This document shows positions 44,716 to 63,920 of a DNA stretch of 64,000 nucleotides, piece by piece (position 1 is the first letter of the stretch; every line of letters begins with the position of its first letter). Source of the DNA: Octopus sinensis (Eukaryota); contig NC_043002.1 in the NCBI RefSeq assembly GCF_006345805.1, positions 4,898,001-4,962,000 of the forward strand, in the 5' to 3' direction. The position numbers were made by a program, and so were the translations under genes. The notes under the pieces were generated by a model. That model ran no database searches and had not been told where the DNA came from. It saw only the letters and a program-made list of their open reading frames with translations.

Positions 44716-45118
44716 TTTTTACTTTTTACTTGTTTCAGTCATTTGACTGTGGTCATGCTGGAGCACCACCTTTTAGTCGTGCAAATCGACCCCAGGACTT
44801 ATTCTTTGTAAGCCTAGTACTTATTCTATCAGTCTCTTTTGCTGAACCGCTAAGTTACGGGGACGTAAACACACCAGCATCGGTTGTCAAGCGATGTTGG
44901 GGTGACAAATGCAGACACACAAACATAGACACACACACACACACATATATATACATATACACGACGGGCTTCTTTCAGTTTCCATCTACCAAATCCACTC
45001 ACAAGGCTTTGGTCGGCCTGAGGCAATAGTAGAAGACACTTGCCCAAGGTGCCACGCAATGGGACTGACCCCGGAACCATGTGGTTGGTTAGCAAGCTAC
45101 TTACCACACACCCACTCC
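44716..45118 (-). mobile_element. SINE family B, full length
   Basis: Reverse-complement head to tail. Confidence 0.85.
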
Positions 45119-45336
<218 letters not shown>

Positions 45337-45879
45337 GACAAACATGACATGGGAATTCAGCCGGGGCATCGGCCCAGGCCCTGGAGCCCTAAGGGCGGGT
45401 CCAGGCATTCAAGAAGGGTCCTTCTGAATATTTGACAAGAGGTGGAGAGGCCCCACCCGCTTCCAGGATAAAGACCAACGACAACTCCTACCTACTCAGA
45501 AAAAAATTCCCTTTCTCGTATATATTATATATAATCGTACTTCGATACGGTTATGATGTAACTTTGGAGACGGTTGCCGTCCGCCTGGTCCGAGAAGGCT
45601 TATGGCGAGAGACACTTAAGTATTACCATCCAGTTTTTTTTTTTAGTATTATTACTTAAGAGAATAGTGAACCGTTGTCAATCTTTTCCAATTTGTATTT
45701 ATATTTTTTTATTATTATTTAGTTTGTTTTTGCTTAAGATGTTAAAATATGGTTTGAGGGAGATTTGACGATGATCGTGATTGTGACAATGTGACTGAGA
45801 GAGGCAAAAAGTAAAGAAAATGAGAGAGTAAAAGAAAGAGAGAGAGAGAGAGAGAGATTGAGTGACAGACAGGGACTTG

Positions 45880-46060
45880 TGTAATTGGACAGGAATGACG
45901 TCAAAATTTAAAAATAAACCACGATTGCACCACATCCGTGTTAGTATTTTTATACTTTAGATCTTATAAGGACCGCCGAAGGTAACACGCGTCTTTACGT
46001 TTTCTCCACGTTTTTCATTATTATTTTCTTATTATTTTGGCTATTTCGATCTAATTGGAT
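45880..46060. promoter_or_regulatory. Candidate promoter/enhancer: CRE + C/EBP site + inverted CCAAT boxes
   Basis: TGACGTCA 45896-45903; ATTGCACCA 45924-45932 (T[TG]NNGNAAT on the minus strand); ATTGG at 45884 and 46054; locally CpG-richer unique sequence. Confidence 0.45.
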
Positions 46061-46303
46061 TAGCATTTTAGCAATATTGATTAATGACACATAACTTCAC
46101 CCGCCTCGAAAAAGAAAACTTTTTTTTTTCGTATTGTTATTGAATTTACCGATGTTTCCAAACACTTGAAATTATATTCTTCGTTCAGTCGCTCATATAT
46201 TTTCCTCATTTTCCTTCTCTTTCATGCCATTTAGTCCATACTCCGTTTATTTGATGTAGTAATTCTAAATTGTCATTTCAAAAAAAAAAAAAAAAGATCA
46301 CCA

Positions 46304-46366
<63 letters not shown>

Positions 46367-46394
46367 GTATGTATGTATATGTTTGGAGATAATC

Positions 46395-46758: not shown

Positions 46759-47734
46759 AGTTCTCTCCATTTTCTTAACTTCAATATTAAAAATATATAT
46801 ATAATTACAATAATCCCTTACATATACATGATCCCTAAGGAGATTATAACTCCCTCGAATTGGCTATATATATATATATATATCTATATATATATATATA
46901 TATTTATATTTGAGCATGTGGTCACGGTTGTTAGAGCGTTTAATGATCAGATCAGACCCTAACTATGGGTGTGTGTATTTATTTTGTGAATATGTTTTGT
47001 TAACCATTTCTGAGAAATATAGAAACATATGCAGTTTTTTTTTTTATTCTCTTGTTTATTTAACCACCGAAATCACTAACCCGCCCCCCAGCCTCCTGAT
47101 CGACATCTAATTTCGTCTAAAACCTATGTTAGTTGTTCCTCAAAGGCTTAAATTAATGGAACGGTGTCATTAACCAGATCGCAAGTGCGCGACGAATTTC
47201 TTTTGACGCATTTCAAGTCCTCACAGAAAGTGGAAGTGGGTGTGATTGTTGTTATGGCTTTTCCACGCTGTCCTTCTAAACAGCTTCTACACACGATCCC
47301 TCAAGCAAGTTGTGTAAAAAAGTACAACTCCAGAATAATATAGATAATAATCGTTTGGTCTTAAGTACATTTATTTCTTGTTTCACCACCCACTTTTTTG
47401 CTGTTGTCACTGCCCGCATCGTCATGCGAAAACCGGCCAACTTACTGTTGTGTATATTGTACAGTTGCAGAACGGGGGCATTTTATCCTGCCGCCGTTCT
47501 TTATAAGCTGTCCCGTGCGTGAAGAACTACACACACACATACACTCGCACACACACACACTCGCACACATACACTCGCACACACACACACTCGCACACAC
47601 ACACACGAATTATTGGCTGTGAAGCAACATAAGTAACTGAAATGTTCCAAAACATTTGTTCAAGCCTAAATTTCACAAATTCTTTTTTGCCTGAAACCTG
47701 GTTTTTGGGTCACTTATATAGCTTCACAGTTTAT

Positions 47735-47750
47735 ACACACACACACACAC

Positions 47751-47782
<32 letters not shown>

Positions 47783-47799
47783 GTATGTATATATATATG

Positions 47800-47860
<61 letters not shown>

Positions 47861-47921
47861 GTATATATGTATGTATGTATATATGTATATATGTATGTAT
47901 ATATGTATGTATGTATGTATG

Positions 47922-47955
<34 letters not shown>

Positions 47956-47969
47956 TGTATATATGTATG

Positions 47970-48000
<31 letters not shown>

Positions 48001-48118
48001 ATATGTATGTATATATGTATGTATGTATATATGTATGTATATATATATATGTATGTATATATATATGTATGTATATATATGTATATATATATGTACACAT
48101 ATGTATATATATTGTATG

Positions 48119-48151
<33 letters not shown>

Positions 48152-48456
48152 ATATGTATGTATGTATGTATATATGTATGTATATATGTATGTATATATG
48201 TATGTATGTATGTATGTAGTATGTATGTATGTATTATGTATGTATATATGTATGTATGTATGTATGTATGTAGTATGTATGTATGTATGTATATATGTAT
48301 GTATGTATGTATATATGTATGTATGTATATATATATGTATGTATATATATATGTATGTATGTATATATATATGTATATATATATGTATATATATATGTAC
48401 ACATATGTATATATATGTACACATATGTATATATGTACACATATGTATATATATGT

Positions 48457-48528
<72 letters not shown>

Positions 48529-48563
48529 TGTATATATATGTACACACATATGTATATATATGT

Positions 48564-48654
<91 letters not shown>

Positions 48655-48685
48655 TATATGTATATATATGTGTGTGTGTATGAGT
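47735..48685. repeat. ~950-bp compound (TA)n/(TATG)n/(CA)n microsatellite
   Basis: Direct reading. Confidence 0.95.
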
Positions 48686-48694
48686 ATATATGTG

Positions 48695-48860
48695 CCGGAG
48701 ACACGTAAAAAGCACCCACTACACTCTCGGAGTGGTTGGCGTTAGGAAGGGCATCAACCTGTAGTAACCCTGCCAGATGAGATTGGGGCCTGGTGCAGCC
48801 TGGTGGTTTCCCAGACCTCAGTCGAACCGTCCAACCCATGCCAGCATGGAAAACGGACGT
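48695..48860 (+). mobile_element. SINE family C, 3' part
   Basis: Core sequence. Confidence 0.75.
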
Positions 48861-48982
48861 TTCGTAAAATACTTTTCTATTCCTGGGCGTTATACTAATA
48901 CATCTGTTTGTCTTGTACACCACCTGTCTTCGTCTTTTATTATTTTTTTTCGTAAACTCCCCCCCTATATATATATATATAT

Positions 48983-51160: not shown

Positions 51161-51502
51161 TTGAACTGAGTAACGAGCAGTTAAGCTCTTGGCAAATTGT
51201 TTTCTTGGTTCAGCAGCAATTTTGGATAAGAGATAGGATCAGTGCCAATCAAATAATTATTGGTAATATCATTGAAACAAATAGAAGCAATACAGGACAG
51301 CAGCAACTTTTTAGTCTTGCCCCCCTCCCCCCCAAAAAAACACTGCACATCTATCTCGGTCTGATAGCATGATAAAATGCACCCAGTCCATGATATAGAG
51401 CGATTAGTGTTAAGAGGGTTATTCAAACTAAAACCATGTGAAAAATAACAATGAAAATCAGGATAGAATTGGCTGGTATTTCTCTGTTGATGTGCATACC
51501 AT

Positions 51503-51862
51503 ATCATCATCATCATTGTTCGACCGTGGTCGAGACAATGGAATTTACTATGTTACACCAGACTTCACGGGCCATCATAGCATTACGGAGGTCCTGTTGC
51601 TAGATGCCTGTATCCCTGGAGATTACATTAGGGTAGGAGAATTATCAAAGAAGCTTGAGAGGCGGTCGGATGGAACTTACACTCGCCTCCTTATGAGAGC
51701 TCAAAATCTCTCGTGGAAGCGTCATCCAACCAAAGTACAAATATATGGGAAATTACCACTTGTATCATCTCTTGTGAAAGGTAGAAGAGTCCAGTTTGCT
51801 GGACATTGTTGTAGAGCTGAAAACGAGGTAATTCTCCTCTGGAAGCCATCTGCTCGCATACC
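51503..51862. mobile_element. RTE LINE copy with 5' inversion
   Basis: 51503-51640 matches the minus-strand 3' end of 43798-44302; 51641-51862 matches the adjoining upstream part in the opposite orientation. Confidence 0.85.
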
Positions 51863-52426
51863 GTATACCGAAGGATGGTTAGTAGTGACAAGATACTAGA
51901 AGACTTGTCCAAATCATACCAGCATGAAAAAAACAGATGAACTTATATTGGTTTAATAAGCTATGATTTAAAAAAGTAATTACCTTTGTGCCTTTGATAT
52001 GAGGTTTGTTTAATCATAGGCTGACAAATTGATTTGGTTTTTATGGGAAAGGAAAATGGTGTATTAGGTGTATGAATATCACAACTTCCCTTTCGTTATG
52101 ATGACTTTATGCTTTGTCAAAATAAAAAGAAAACAAAAAAAATTTTTAGCACTGTTGTAAATTTTAATTTAATTAATTTATTTTTTTCTCTTCAGGGCAG
52201 GGGAAGACAAGTGTTGCACTGGGCACTTGTGTCTAAGCCTTGTTGTTTAGGGCAACAGTTGGCTGTCTGTTTGGATCAGGTTAGCTAACATCAGTTAGTC
52301 ACCAGATACAACAGTCTGAACGACCCCTTCAGGTACAAAGGAACAAAAGTGAAACAAGAAGGAAGCAAAATAGCTGCAAGTAATACTTTTGTTATTGACG
52401 AGACGGAACCATTTACCGATTTAATC

Positions 52427-52600
52427 ATGCAGTCACAAGACAATACTCATCTTGAATGCCAAGACCAATCCACGGATCTTCAAACTGACGTTGTTGATGA
52501 TATATTCCAGATATTTGATACCTCCCCAACAGCCAAAACCCCAGTGATTGACACATCTTATTTAACCACGTACGGTATCGAAGATGAATGGCCTATTTAA
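52427..52600 (+). other. 57-aa upstream ORF overlapping the bZIP start codon out of frame
   Basis: ATG 52427 with A at -3; TAA 52598-52600 lies 5 nt before the donor; inside exon 52196-52605 (acceptor ctcttcAG, donor GAG|GTAAGT). Confidence 0.65.
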
Positions 52601-52605
52601 CAGAG
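52584..52605 (+). CDS. bZIP gene, first coding segment (MNGLFNR-G, phase 1)
   Basis: ATG with A at -3; upstream in-frame stop at 52545-47; donor GTAAGT at 52606. Confidence 0.65.
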
Positions 52606-52754
52606 GTAAGTGTAACCTATCGAAATTGCTTGAGATGATCGACTCCTCTCGTTTGGAGTTACTTTTTTTTTTTTTTTAACATATTGTTGACAGACAAATT
52701 GATTGATTAATTGCTACAATTTATAAAGCCGTTTTATACAATTTATAAAGCCAG

Positions 52755-53015
52755 TGCCGCCTGACTGGCGTCCGTGTTGGTGACACGTAAAAGCACCAAC
52801 CGATTGTGGCCGTTTGCCAGCCTGCTCTGGCCCCTCTGCCGGTGGCACGTAAAAAACACCCACTACACATTAGGAAGGGCATCCAGCTGTAGAAACACTG
52901 CCAAATCAGACTAGAGCCTGGTGCAGCCTCCATGGCTTACCAGACCCCGGTTAAACCGTCCAACCCATGCTAGCATGGAAAACGGACGTTAAACGATGAT
53001 GATGATGATGATGAT
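52755..53015 (+). mobile_element. SINE family C (intronic)
   Basis: Core plus (GAT)n tail. Confidence 0.8.
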
Positions 53016-53916: not shown

Positions 53917-54047
53917 GCTCAAGCCCAAATACGAAACTCAGATCTTTTGATGTTGAAGAGAATCTCTTAACGGAACAATTCCCTTCAGACCTGGACAGTT
54001 TGTTACTTTCAAATGACATATCCAACCTCCTTCTACCACTGGATGCA
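53917..54047 (+). CDS. bZIP gene, middle exon (131 nt, phase 1 to phase 0)
   Basis: Acceptor ttttttccctcaccAG; donor GCA|GTAAGT at 54048; acidic/Leu-rich DVEENLLTEQFPSDLDSLLL; phases join both neighbours in frame. Confidence 0.7.
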
Positions 54048-56219: not shown

Positions 56220-56355
56220 AGGGCATCCAGCCGTAGAAACACTGCCAGATCAGACTGGGCCTGATGCAGCCTTCTGGCTTCACAGACCCCAGTTGAACCG
56301 TCCAACCCATGCTAGCATGGAAAGCGGATGCTAAATGATGATAATGATGATGATG
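56220..56355 (+). mobile_element. SINE family C, 3' part (intronic)
   Basis: Core plus (GAT)n tail. Confidence 0.75.
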
Positions 56356-56814: not shown

Positions 56815-57801
56815 GATTCCTCCCAAAAGTATTTGGATGAGAATATTACACAAGGTGTAGGTTCTACAGAAACTTCTTTTGATTCGGATCTCCTACTTGA
56901 TTCGCAAAAATCTCTCTTGGAATCAGAGCCGCTGTACGAGCATTACTCTGAATTAGATAAGATGCTGGAAATTTTGTCACCTCTAGATGATCAAAAGGTG
57001 GAGTTTTACCAGGAGACAGACCAGAAGCCGAATAATTTACCAATGACAGACCAGAAACTGAGTGATATGTCTGAAATTGACCCTCTCCTAGAAATTTACT
57101 CTGAGCCACTTGATGGTTATATTGCTTTCCCTGATGCAGAAGAAAAGCTGAAAATTGACCCAACAGTAGATGAGAAACCAAGTCTTTATACAGAGCTAAA
57201 TCAGAATATAGAGACTTGCCCTGCGATAGATCAGAATTCAAAGACTTATCCTGCAACAAATGAAATTCTTGAGGTTTTTCCTGAACAAGGTAAGAAGCAA
57301 ATTACCTCAACCCATCAAAACTCACAAAAAGTATGCCTGAATCAGATGCCTGAGAATAAAGTTACATTTAAGAGGCAGAGCTACACTCAGCCTCATGCAT
57401 TATTACTGAATAACAGTCATGTAGTAGGTATATCGTCATCATCATCATCATCATCATCCACAACAACACCTGTTGAAGACCACGAATGTAGTACTAGTAA
57501 AAAGCTTCGTCTAGCAGGTGAAATCTCCGATACAGCCCAGACATCTGTAAGCAATAGACAAATGACAACATCATCTCTCACGGCTGGTGAAATGTCTGCA
57601 ATTGAGAAATATAATGAGAGGAGAAGACGAAATAATATAGCATCACGCAAATCGAGAGAGAATCGTAAGAAAAAGAATCAAAATGATTTGGTGGAACTGG
57701 AAGAACTTGGGATGATAAATGAAAATCTGAAGCTGAAAGTCAAAGATCTTGAGGAATGTTTGGAAAAGACAAAAGCAGAATTAGTAAAGGCTTTGATGTA
57801 A
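56815..57801 (+). CDS. bZIP transcription factor terminal exon (C/EBP-PAR related, BmCbz-like); full protein ~379 aa
   Basis: Acceptor tttttttgtAG|GAT (phase 0); basic region KYNERRRRNNIASRKSRENRKKK plus zipper L..L..L; stop TAA 57799-57801. Confidence 0.88.
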   Translation, partial: DSSQKYLDENITQGVGSTETSFDSDLLLDSQKSLLESEPLYEHYSELDKMLEILSPLDDQKVEFYQETDQKPNNLPMTDQKLSDMSEIDPLLEIYSEPLDGYIAFPDAEEKLKIDPTVDEKPSLYTELNQNIETCPAIDQNSKTYPATNEILEVFPEQGKKQITSTHQNSQKVCLNQMPENKVTFKRQSYTQPHALLLNNSHVVGISSSSSSSSSTTTPVEDHECSTSKKLRLAGEISDTAQTSVSNRQMTTSSLTAGEMSAIEKYNERRRRNNIASRKSRENRKKKNQNDLVELEELGMINENLKLKVKDLEECLEKTKAELVKALM

Positions 57802-63344: not shown

Positions 63345-63920
63345 AGCCACATCATCATCATCGTTTAACGTCCGTTTTCCGCGCTAGCACGGGTTGGACG
63401 GTTCGACCGGGGTCTGGGAAGCCAGGGCTGCACCAGGCTCCAGTCTGATATGGCAGAGTTTCTACAGCTAGATGCCCTTCCTAATGCCAACCACTCCGCG
63501 AGTGTAGTGGGTGCTTTTTACATGCCACCTGCACAGGTGCCAGGGGGGGGGTCTGGCATCGGCCACGATCGGTTGGAGCTTTTAACGTGCCACCAGCACG
63601 GGAGCCAGCCAAGGCAGCGCTGGCAACGGCCACGTTCGGATGGTGCGTTTTATGTGCCACCGGCACAGAAGCCAGTCGGGGCGGCGCTGGCATCTCAGTT
63701 ATTCCCCCACCTCCCAGTTGAGGGTTCTTGTGTTGCAAGTTACTTGGTGACCTTGTTGGGGTGATGGGGGGCCACATAAAAAGTACCCTGTAAAATGGTT
63801 AGTGTTAGGAAGGGAATCCAGCCAAAGCAAACAGTAGAGCTTGGTACAGTCATCAAGCTTGCCAGCTCCTATCAAACAGTCCGACCCATGCCAGCATGGA
63901 AGGCAGATGTTAAATGATGC
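63345..63920. mobile_element. Family C SINE copies in both orientations
   Basis: (CAT)n plus minus-strand core at 63345-63690; plus-strand degenerate copy at 63775-63920. Confidence 0.75.

Follow-up and report, generated by a model that had tools for sequence, protein, structure and literature searches.

The window analysed here is a stretch of 64,000 nucleotides (nt) from Octopus sinensis (contig NC_043002.1, positions 4,898,001 to 4,962,000); all positions below are counted from its first letter, and all features of the gene lie on the forward strand. It carries a gene for a basic leucine zipper (bZIP) transcription factor, the annotated start codon of which (52584) is overlapped out of frame by a 57-codon upstream open reading frame (uORF) at 52427..52600, here called ORF1. 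The exon proposed for this region by an earlier sequence-only reading, 52196-52605, and the ORF coordinates within it all hold when the sequence is re-read and compared with the splice sites and with a spliced RNA contig, L001 (run SRR3401912), from a related octopod. This exon, exon 2 of the gene, is preceded by the acceptor ttctcttcag/GGCAGG at 52195/52196, which is exactly where conservation with Argonauta begins, and ends at a perfect donor, AACAGAG/gtaagt, at 52605/52606. Its last 22 nt are the start of the annotated bZIP ORF (52584..52605; ATG AAT GGC CTA TTT AAC AGA G, or MNGLFNR, in phase 1 at the donor), a segment annotated identically in O. vulgaris, O. bimaculoides and Argonauta. 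Coding exon 3 (53917..54047, 131 nt) is entered in phase 1 and left in phase 0, on which its splice sites, L001 and three annotated orthologues agree; the last coding exon extends from 56815 to the stop codon at 57801. L001 has exactly these exon junctions and also carries a 57-codon ORF that overlaps the main ATG by 17 nt, and the annotations of O. vulgaris, O. bimaculoides and Argonauta hians give the same three-exon structure and MNGLFN start.

Joining the ATG at 52584 to exons 53917-54047 and 56815-57801 yields a protein of 379 residues, which by eye is identical to O. sinensis XP_029637651.1 (P0008, uncharacterized protein LOC115212945 isoform X1); the O. vulgaris copy shows 98% identity. 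The bZIP domain (residues 315-364, at about 57604-57753) lies at the C-terminus and matches Pfam bZIP_2 (PF07716) with 29.1 bits against a gathering cut-off of 22.3. The basic region, RRRRNNIASRKSRENRKKK, is not of the ATF4 type. The nearest PDB relatives are C/EBP beta and alpha, followed by NFIL3, and no ATF4 chain is found among the PDB matches at E <= 1. The bZIP_2 match and these structural relatives bear out the initial description of the protein as a non-ATF4, C/EBP-PAR-like bZIP.

ORF1 opens with an ATG in the context ttaatcATGc (A at -3), encodes MQSQDNTHLECQDQSTDLQTDVVDDIFQIFDTSPTAKTPVIDTSYLTTYGIEDEWPI and closes with the TAA at 52598-52600. This stop falls 17 nt past the bZIP start, which has the context tcgaagATGa (again A at -3), and the bZIP frame is +1 relative to ORF1. 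Within exon 2 the bZIP frame contains stops at 52545 and 52563, which bar a start further upstream in the exon, in agreement with the earlier deduction that the bZIP ORF has to begin here; the third frame contains many stops. Two nested ORFs noticed at the same time, 52456-52488 (10 codons) and 52497-52547 (16 codons), are indeed present but incidental and immaterial, as L001 and/or Argonauta do not retain their ATGs. When the exon is shuffled, only 3% of the ORFs opened by an ATG attain a length of 57 codons; the decisive argument that ORF1 is more than chance is its conservation. Four octopod lineages (O. sinensis/vulgaris, O. bimaculoides, the L001 species and Argonauta) retain the ATG, the frame, the TAA and the 17-nt overlap, and the indels within ORF1 in Argonauta are of +3, +12 and -3 nt. 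By the Nei-Gojobori method the ratio of nonsynonymous to synonymous substitution rates (dN/dS) is 0.18-0.31 in the frame of ORF1 as compared with 0.6-2.0 in the other two frames, and 0.34-0.72 for the bZIP protein. Identity between octopus and Argonauta by codon position is 0.76/0.80/0.43 (Fisher p = 7.6e-9, third positions being saturated). These comparisons indicate that ORF1 evolves as coding sequence under purifying selection at the level of its peptide. ORF1 is therefore a real and conserved upstream ORF, which overlaps the annotated bZIP start out of frame as had been proposed. A Pfam search with the peptide gave no match, and no stand-alone homologues were found beyond the same loci.

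The 5′-end of L001 departs from the genome exactly at the 52196 acceptor, and its first 11 nt (GACCGCCTAAG) agree at 10 of 11 positions with 45971-45981 of the window (GACCGCCGAAG/gtaaca). A probable non-coding first exon is accordingly placed at 45940..45981, ending GGACCGCCGAAG/gtaaca; its 3′-end is firm while its 5′-end is an estimate. It sits in the sole upstream block that is conserved with Argonauta, where exon 1 and its donor are likewise conserved (L003, 1056-1266). The preceding part of this block (45873..45939) is promoter-like, being conserved between octopus and Argonauta where its flanks are not, and contains an inverted CCAAT (ATTGG), a perfect palindromic cAMP response element (CRE), TGACGTCA (45896-45903; TGACATCA in Argonauta), a TATA-like TTTAAAAATAA, and GATTGCACCACATCCGTGTT. 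A C/EBP-like GATTGCAC(C/A)ACATCC follows downstream in the block, and then the donor. To judge from the motifs, 45873-45981 suggests a CREB/ATF- or C/EBP-driven gene of the immediate-early style. No ATG is found between 45898 and 45981 in octopus, and the same is true of Argonauta. The sequence-only reading had placed a short permissive uORF1 in a first exon yet to be found; this part of the proposal fell, as the likely exon has no ATG past the TATA-like box and 17 of 18 related RNA contigs have no ATG upstream of ORF1. The ATG at 45895 was also rejected as a uORF1 start, lying inside the CRE-like site and being shifted in Argonauta, where a stop follows immediately.

In exon 2, ORF1 is preceded by a leader (52196..52426) which is free of AUGs: 0 are observed in 231 nt against an expectation of 4.5 (P = 0.008). 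Over its first ~135 nt (52196-52330) the leader is unusually conserved, at 77% identity to Argonauta against 54-56% in neighbouring non-coding segments. Two small hairpins are kept (ACAAGUGUU/GGCACUUGU and CUAAC/GUUAG); their fold z-scores are weak (-1.2 and -2.4), and the octopod comparison revealed no compensatory changes in them. The conserved element was not seen in the leader of the gastropod Gigantopelta, and an Rfam scan of the exons found no family. A start of ORF1 upstream of 52427 was considered and discarded: although all octopods keep this frame open from 52289 onward, no codon periodicity is seen over 52289-52426. Since neither the likely exon 1, from the CRE site to the donor, nor the 231-nt leader contains an ATG, the codon at 52427 is the first AUG of the mRNA as predicted from the putative transcription start, and from its position ORF1 must capture most scanning ribosomes.

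The octopod proteins belong to a broad family of invertebrate bZIPs of the C/EBP-PAR-like kind. The family was found by a profile search of 1.8 billion representatives and by a word-indexed search, after which RNA contigs and genomic loci (designated here by L numbers) were fetched. Most of the related contigs come from metatranscriptomes and anonymous runs; the independence of lineages is roughly estimated, and several of the tests that follow rest on few substitutions. The sole named member is the "cell death specification protein 2-like" of Gigantopelta aegis. In the main frame the family is recognized by GLF(D/N) near the N-terminus, F.DLSNFL, DH.DY..K.KR.R, and a basic region of the form KY.ERR.KNNIASRRSRE.RKQKF. 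Every fetched member that extends far enough in the 5′ direction possesses an upstream ORF of 53-83 codons, and a homologous ORF1 is present in 26 lineages, including squid-like RNA contigs, Gigantopelta and many marine transcripts. The ORF1 consensus is P..LDELV..LDI, a variable linker, and TTF..ED.WPI; the octopus counterpart of LDELV..LDI is VDDIFQIFDT, and VDDIFQIFDTSP of octopus is aligned to LDELVDLLDIPG. A pair of conserved motifs with a variable linker between them is a pattern like that of a protein domain, and conservation is strongest at the C-terminus and in the context of the stop codon. In 17 of 18 related RNA contigs no other AUG precedes that of ORF1, and a purine occupies its -3 position in 13 of 14.

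The site at which ORF1 ends is found in octopus at 52589..52601 and reads TGG CCT ATT TAA C (W-P-I-stop-C), or GGC CTA TTT AAC (G-L-F-N) in the +1 frame; it is both the conserved termination site and a candidate +1 shift site. The pattern TGG-C(C/A)T-NTT-stop closes ORF1 in 26 distinct lineages, with 13 TAA, 12 TGA and a single TAG, and in all 26 the bZIP frame is +1 relative to ORF1, the stop being embedded in the main-frame codons TTT-AAC, TTT-GAC or TTT-AGC of GLF(N/D/S). A C stands directly after the stop in 25 of the 26, at a position that is synonymous in the main frame and outside ORF1. Elsewhere in these ORFs the share of Asp/Asn codons ending in C is 54% (24% in the octopod contig L001), against which the enrichment has a binomial p of 5e-6 naively, or 1.4e-3 if only 15 lineages are taken as independent. 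The site is exactly CUU-UGA-C in L014 and UUU-UGA-C in L013 and L021. In both octopus and Gigantopelta an intron begins 5 nt after the ORF1 stop. Adenosine-to-inosine editing of the ORF1 TAA was rejected as an explanation of the locus: it would merely extend ORF1 into exon 3, to stop after 11 codons, and the stop is kept far outside the cephalopods.

The bZIP frame is far less uniform in its start codons. An AUG (M-S/N-G-L-F) preceding the ORF1 stop by 17 nt is present in the octopods, L011, L013/15/16, L014 and L029; in other relatives the codon at this position is ATA, ACA, ACC, ACG, ATC, AAC or CCC. Conservation of the overlap in orthologues, to which the sequence-only reading had looked, is thus found in the four octopod lineages, while in many members of the wider family the overlap is lost and the peptide kept. 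In many lineages the main-frame AUGs are offset from the ORF1 stop by -17, +7, +16, +19, +22 or +25 nt, and in Gigantopelta, L006, L022, L025, L027, L024 and L034 the open main frame contains no AUG upstream of the stop at all. Comparison of L022 with L025 reveals that the 70-79 AUG-free codons after the ORF1 stop are coding: the proportion of synonymous differences (pS) is 0.16 and that of nonsynonymous differences (pN) 0.05 (p = 0.014), indels are of 12, 3 and 12 nt, and the first 33 nt after the stop contain three differences, all at main-frame third positions. Coding constraint therefore moves from frame 0 to frame +1 at the site, although the numbers are small (ORF1 third positions upstream, L022 and L025 downstream). 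A conserved (K)..(R/Q)TDW stretch is common to L018, L024 and L028, and in the latter two it precedes the first downstream AUG. The main frame of Gigantopelta is open across the intron and reads GLFNEGLAGDD, in the family pattern, through to an internal Met annotated by NCBI as the start.

The NCBI model of the Gigantopelta gene (CM027800.1; L094, 8872-9080 and 9903-10000) begins at this internal Met with MWGLDD. Its coding sequence omits the conserved ORF1 exon and 34 further in-frame upstream codons, probably owing to the absence of an AUG from that frame. In the squid-like relative L010 (80-760) the bZIP frame has ATGs at 80 and 92, stays open across the entire overlap with ORF1 and could give a product of 226 residues; its upstream part looks like nonsense translated out of frame, and L006 does not share the feature.

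ORF1 most likely gates bZIP synthesis at its stop codon. Because ORF1 starts at the first AUG, in good context, essentially all scanning ribosomes would translate it, producing a conserved acidic peptide which ends at NUU-stop-C, a weak termination context, and it is exactly at this stop that the +1 frame of the bZIP would turn coding. By default ribosomes would terminate there and no bZIP protein would be made. Under the established rules the mRNA would also be sensitive to nonsense-mediated decay whenever ribosomes terminate at the ORF1 stop, since this lies 136 nt upstream of the last exon junction. Only those ribosomes that change frame, through a +1 shift at AUU-UAA-C, would produce the factor, and the product would be an ORF1-bZIP fusion with ORF1 as its N-terminal acidic domain; in octopods, leaky scanning to the AUG at 52584, 17 nt upstream of the ORF1 stop, would provide a second route. 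Slow termination at the site, frameshifting, and a regulated ratio between termination and frameshifting are what we infer from the sequences. A two-frame cassette with +1 frameshifting at AUU-UAA-C as the leading route into the bZIP frame is our tentative preference, held at slightly less than an even chance. It is favoured because it accounts for the members lacking an AUG, for the domain-like conservation of ORF1 and for the selection in favour of a weak stop context, and because the site has the same form as prfB CUU-UGA-C.

Several observations weigh against frameshifting. The main one is the bZIP-frame AUG of the octopods, 17 nt before the ORF1 stop, which has A at -3. Of the clades in which the ORF1 codon pair permits such an AUG (xAT-Gxx), about five independent ones keep it and one does not, which suggests that it is used; initiation at 52584 by leaky scanning is probably real as well in octopods. 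Relatives without the AUG could use alternative first exons or non-AUG starts. An ORF1 fused in frame to the bZIP was not found among 186 proteins and 95 loci, and no conserved 3′ stimulatory RNA structure was found after the site in octopods. To our knowledge, moreover, cellular +1 frameshifting is very rare among animals.

The second-best model is a purely inhibitory uORF with a conserved peptide, of the kind found in CHOP and in plant bZIP11, which we regard as a substantial possibility though on balance an improbable one. The ORF1 peptide and the weak stop would stall termination, block scanning and trigger mRNA decay, and the bZIP would be made from its own AUG only (52584 in octopods, different AUGs in the other animals), with no frameshift, when the ORF1 AUG is skipped, for example upon phosphorylation of eIF2alpha, or when a metabolite relieves the stall; such a CHOP-like gene may well respond to the integrated stress response. 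Selection on the ORF1 peptide, the peak of conservation at its C-terminus and stop context, the retention of the AUG 17 nt upstream of the stop in octopods and about four other clades, the NCBI models starting at 52584, and the precedents of the CHOP, Xrp1 and plant S1-bZIP leaders are all congruent with it. It leaves unexplained, however, the AUG-less relatives in which coding sequence directly follows the ORF1 stop, and the N-terminal LDELV motif, which would lie far from the peptidyl-transferase centre. Leaky scanning to 52584 should also be inefficient because three AUGs precede it, that of ORF1 in good context and two further ones. Another route would be termination followed by reinitiation, in which the 40S subunit would stay on the mRNA after ORF1 and restart at the AUG 17 nt upstream of the stop (octopods) or 7-25 nt downstream of it (others), coupling bZIP synthesis to the translation of ORF1. 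Main-frame AUGs do cluster near the ORF1 stop in many lineages, and the sequence just 5′ of the stop is conserved; but in L022, L025 and L034 no AUG lies closer than about 180 nt to the stop, ORF1 is long for reinitiation, and no tethering motif complementary to rRNA was found, though no search aimed at one was made. We consider this route very unlikely.

In ATF4 and ATF5 an overlapping inhibitory uORF diverts ribosomes in unstressed cells and is bypassed upon phosphorylation of eIF2alpha. The sequence-only reading applied this logic, delayed reinitiation with a permissive uORF1, a long inhibitory overlapping uORF and induction when ternary complex is scarce, to the octopus gene. The likeness to the leaders of vertebrate ATF4/ATF5 and of Drosophila crc, in which an upstream ORF of ~55-60 codons runs over the main AUG of a bZIP stress factor in another frame, is genuine in octopods, and the 57 codons of ORF1 approach the size of ATF4 uORF2. 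The octopus leader nevertheless differs in having no short uORF1, with no AUG in the 231-nt leader or the likely first exon of octopus and Argonauta and none 5′ of ORF1 in 17 of 18 related transcripts. Strong purifying selection acts on the ORF1 peptide, many relatives have lost the overlap while keeping the peptide, and the protein is C/EBP-PAR-like and no orthologue of ATF4. ATF4 logic, which requires a uORF1 and makes the overlap with the main AUG its central element, accounts for few of the conserved features. It is poorly supported for this leader, and we judge it very improbable; induction by eIF2alpha phosphorylation through a CHOP-like bypass, or in the manner reported for Xrp1, may nevertheless occur. 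Selection on the peptide might also arise if ORF1 were an alternative N-terminal coding exon, used in a minor isoform. The four octopod lineages all have a weak donor at 52575..52576 (ACG/GTATCG), the sole GT in ORF1 with the right phase, through which ORF1 codons 1-49 would be spliced in frame to exon 53917. This donor, though, lies 31 nt before a perfect one and is unused in L001 and in the NCBI isoforms X1 and X2; the GT is replaced by GGA in Gigantopelta, L010, L022 and L025, and splicing there would discard IEDEWPI, the most conserved residues of ORF1. Such an isoform is, in our opinion, very improbable.

With regard to known systems, the frameshift reading resembles the programmed +1 frameshifting of antizyme (OAZ) and bacterial prfB: ORF1 stops in a context that is poor for termination, and ORF2 follows in the +1 frame, in many members of the octopus family with no AUG of its own. 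The NUU-UGA-C found in the family matches prfB CUU-UGA-C, and the antizyme UCC-UGA-U also resembles AUU-UAA-C. Unlike in those genes, no 3′ pseudoknot was found and an AUG is kept in ORF2 of the octopods, where the frameshift is a sequence-based candidate. Nascent-peptide stimulators are known for fungal antizyme (PMC4505036). CHOP/DDIT3 and the plant S1-group bZIP11 resemble the octopus gene in being bZIP mRNAs with a uORF whose peptide matters, through peptide-dependent stalling; their uORF stops, in contrast, are not shared with the first main-frame codons and their main ORFs always have an AUG of their own. As an AUG-initiated leader ORF under purifying selection for its amino acids, ORF1 would be placed in the class of conserved-peptide uORFs.

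Two further bZIP genes may be likened to the octopus gene by their layout. In Caenorhabditis elegans zip-2, a conserved overlapping ORF is translated by default, with the main ORF in the +1 frame; a +1 shift under elongation stress, giving a fusion protein, has been proposed together with competition between AUGs (Kniazeva and Ruvkun 2025; PMC11831180). The overlap in zip-2 is 121 codons with no defined shift site proposed, whereas in the octopus family it is 17 nt or none and a discrete NUU-stop-C is present. The long isoforms of Drosophila Xrp1, a non-ATF4 bZIP induced in the integrated stress response, carry a uORF2 which overlaps the main ORF in another frame and represses it, and the conserved uORF2 peptide has its counterpart at the main-ORF N-terminus of other Drosophila species (PMC8514241, PMC13268129). 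Xrp1 differs in that its uORF2 has 288 codons and is preceded by a uORF1, and in possessing an AT-hook. The full-length protein of the octopus family may be made only through programmed +1 frameshifting at the conserved NUU-stop-C, possibly by the same logic as in zip-2 and Xrp1; we hold this as a conjecture, appreciably below an even chance.

An insect AT-hook bZIP with an architecture like that of Xrp1, P0012 of the firefly Abscondita terminalis (L095), ranks high in the profile search. Near its N-terminus (L095, 14100-14260) it has ...SREKWPYSLL... in frame, which faintly recalls the ORF1 end ...EDKWPI followed by a stop; the predicted protein looks like a threefold mis-assembled repeat. 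The gene was rejected as a carrier of ORF1, as EKWPY is in frame and there is no WPI-stop site, and homology to ORF1 could not be established.

A few other features of the window deserve mention. In the last coding exon, copies of a direct repeat, GACAGACCAGAA (57016-57057), lie 30 nt apart and flank ten residues, KPNNLPMTDQ, which are missing from NCBI isoform X2 and from O. bimaculoides, as if through a tandem duplication or indel of 30 nt rather than true alternative splicing. Just 5′ of exon 2 is an open frame of 153 codons (51438-51899, containing RVQFAGHCCRAENEVILLW), which resembles the remnant of the C-terminus of a retrotransposon ORF and is absent from the orthologous place in O. bimaculoides, the alignment jumping from 51504 to 51856. 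A repeat like a short interspersed nuclear element occurs at 52740-52995, 48746-48870, 56230-56335 and 63369-63760, with many copies in both orientations in the window and in octopus loci; a stretch of 11 residues recurs in its translation. Long TA/CA-rich microsatellites are found at 47633-48742, 45100-45340 and 46290-46390; dozens of sub-threshold microRNA-like Rfam matches (mir-297, mir-466 and others) in TA/CA tracts are low-complexity artefacts, far below the gathering scores.

Overlapping upstream ORFs on stress bZIPs (ATF4, ATF5, CHOP, Xrp1 and zip-2) are central to turning damage to translation into transcription. Gating of a stress bZIP by such an ORF is known; the particular cassette found here, with its breadth and its discrete site resembling that of prfB, seems not to have been described before. 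A full-text literature search turned up no account of uORFs in cephalopods, nothing on the octopus bZIP family, and no paper linking zip-2 with Xrp1. The arrangement is conserved from octopods to a gastropod and many marine animals, and its discrete, sequence-defined site can be moved into reporters. Were ORF1 only an inhibitory uORF with a conserved peptide, it would, to judge from the literature searched, be the first of its kind known from cephalopods and molluscs, and would still mark the bZIP as a candidate stress-inducible factor. If the +1 signal is true, this would be the second broadly conserved cellular +1 recoding system of animals after antizyme, and a simple new metazoan model for the recoding field. 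The proposal made for zip-2 would then gain support from an independent family, and current annotations (MNGLFN in octopus, the internal Met in Gigantopelta) would be missing an N-terminal domain. The synthesis of a transcription factor would, in these animals, directly read out the state of translation termination and elongation.

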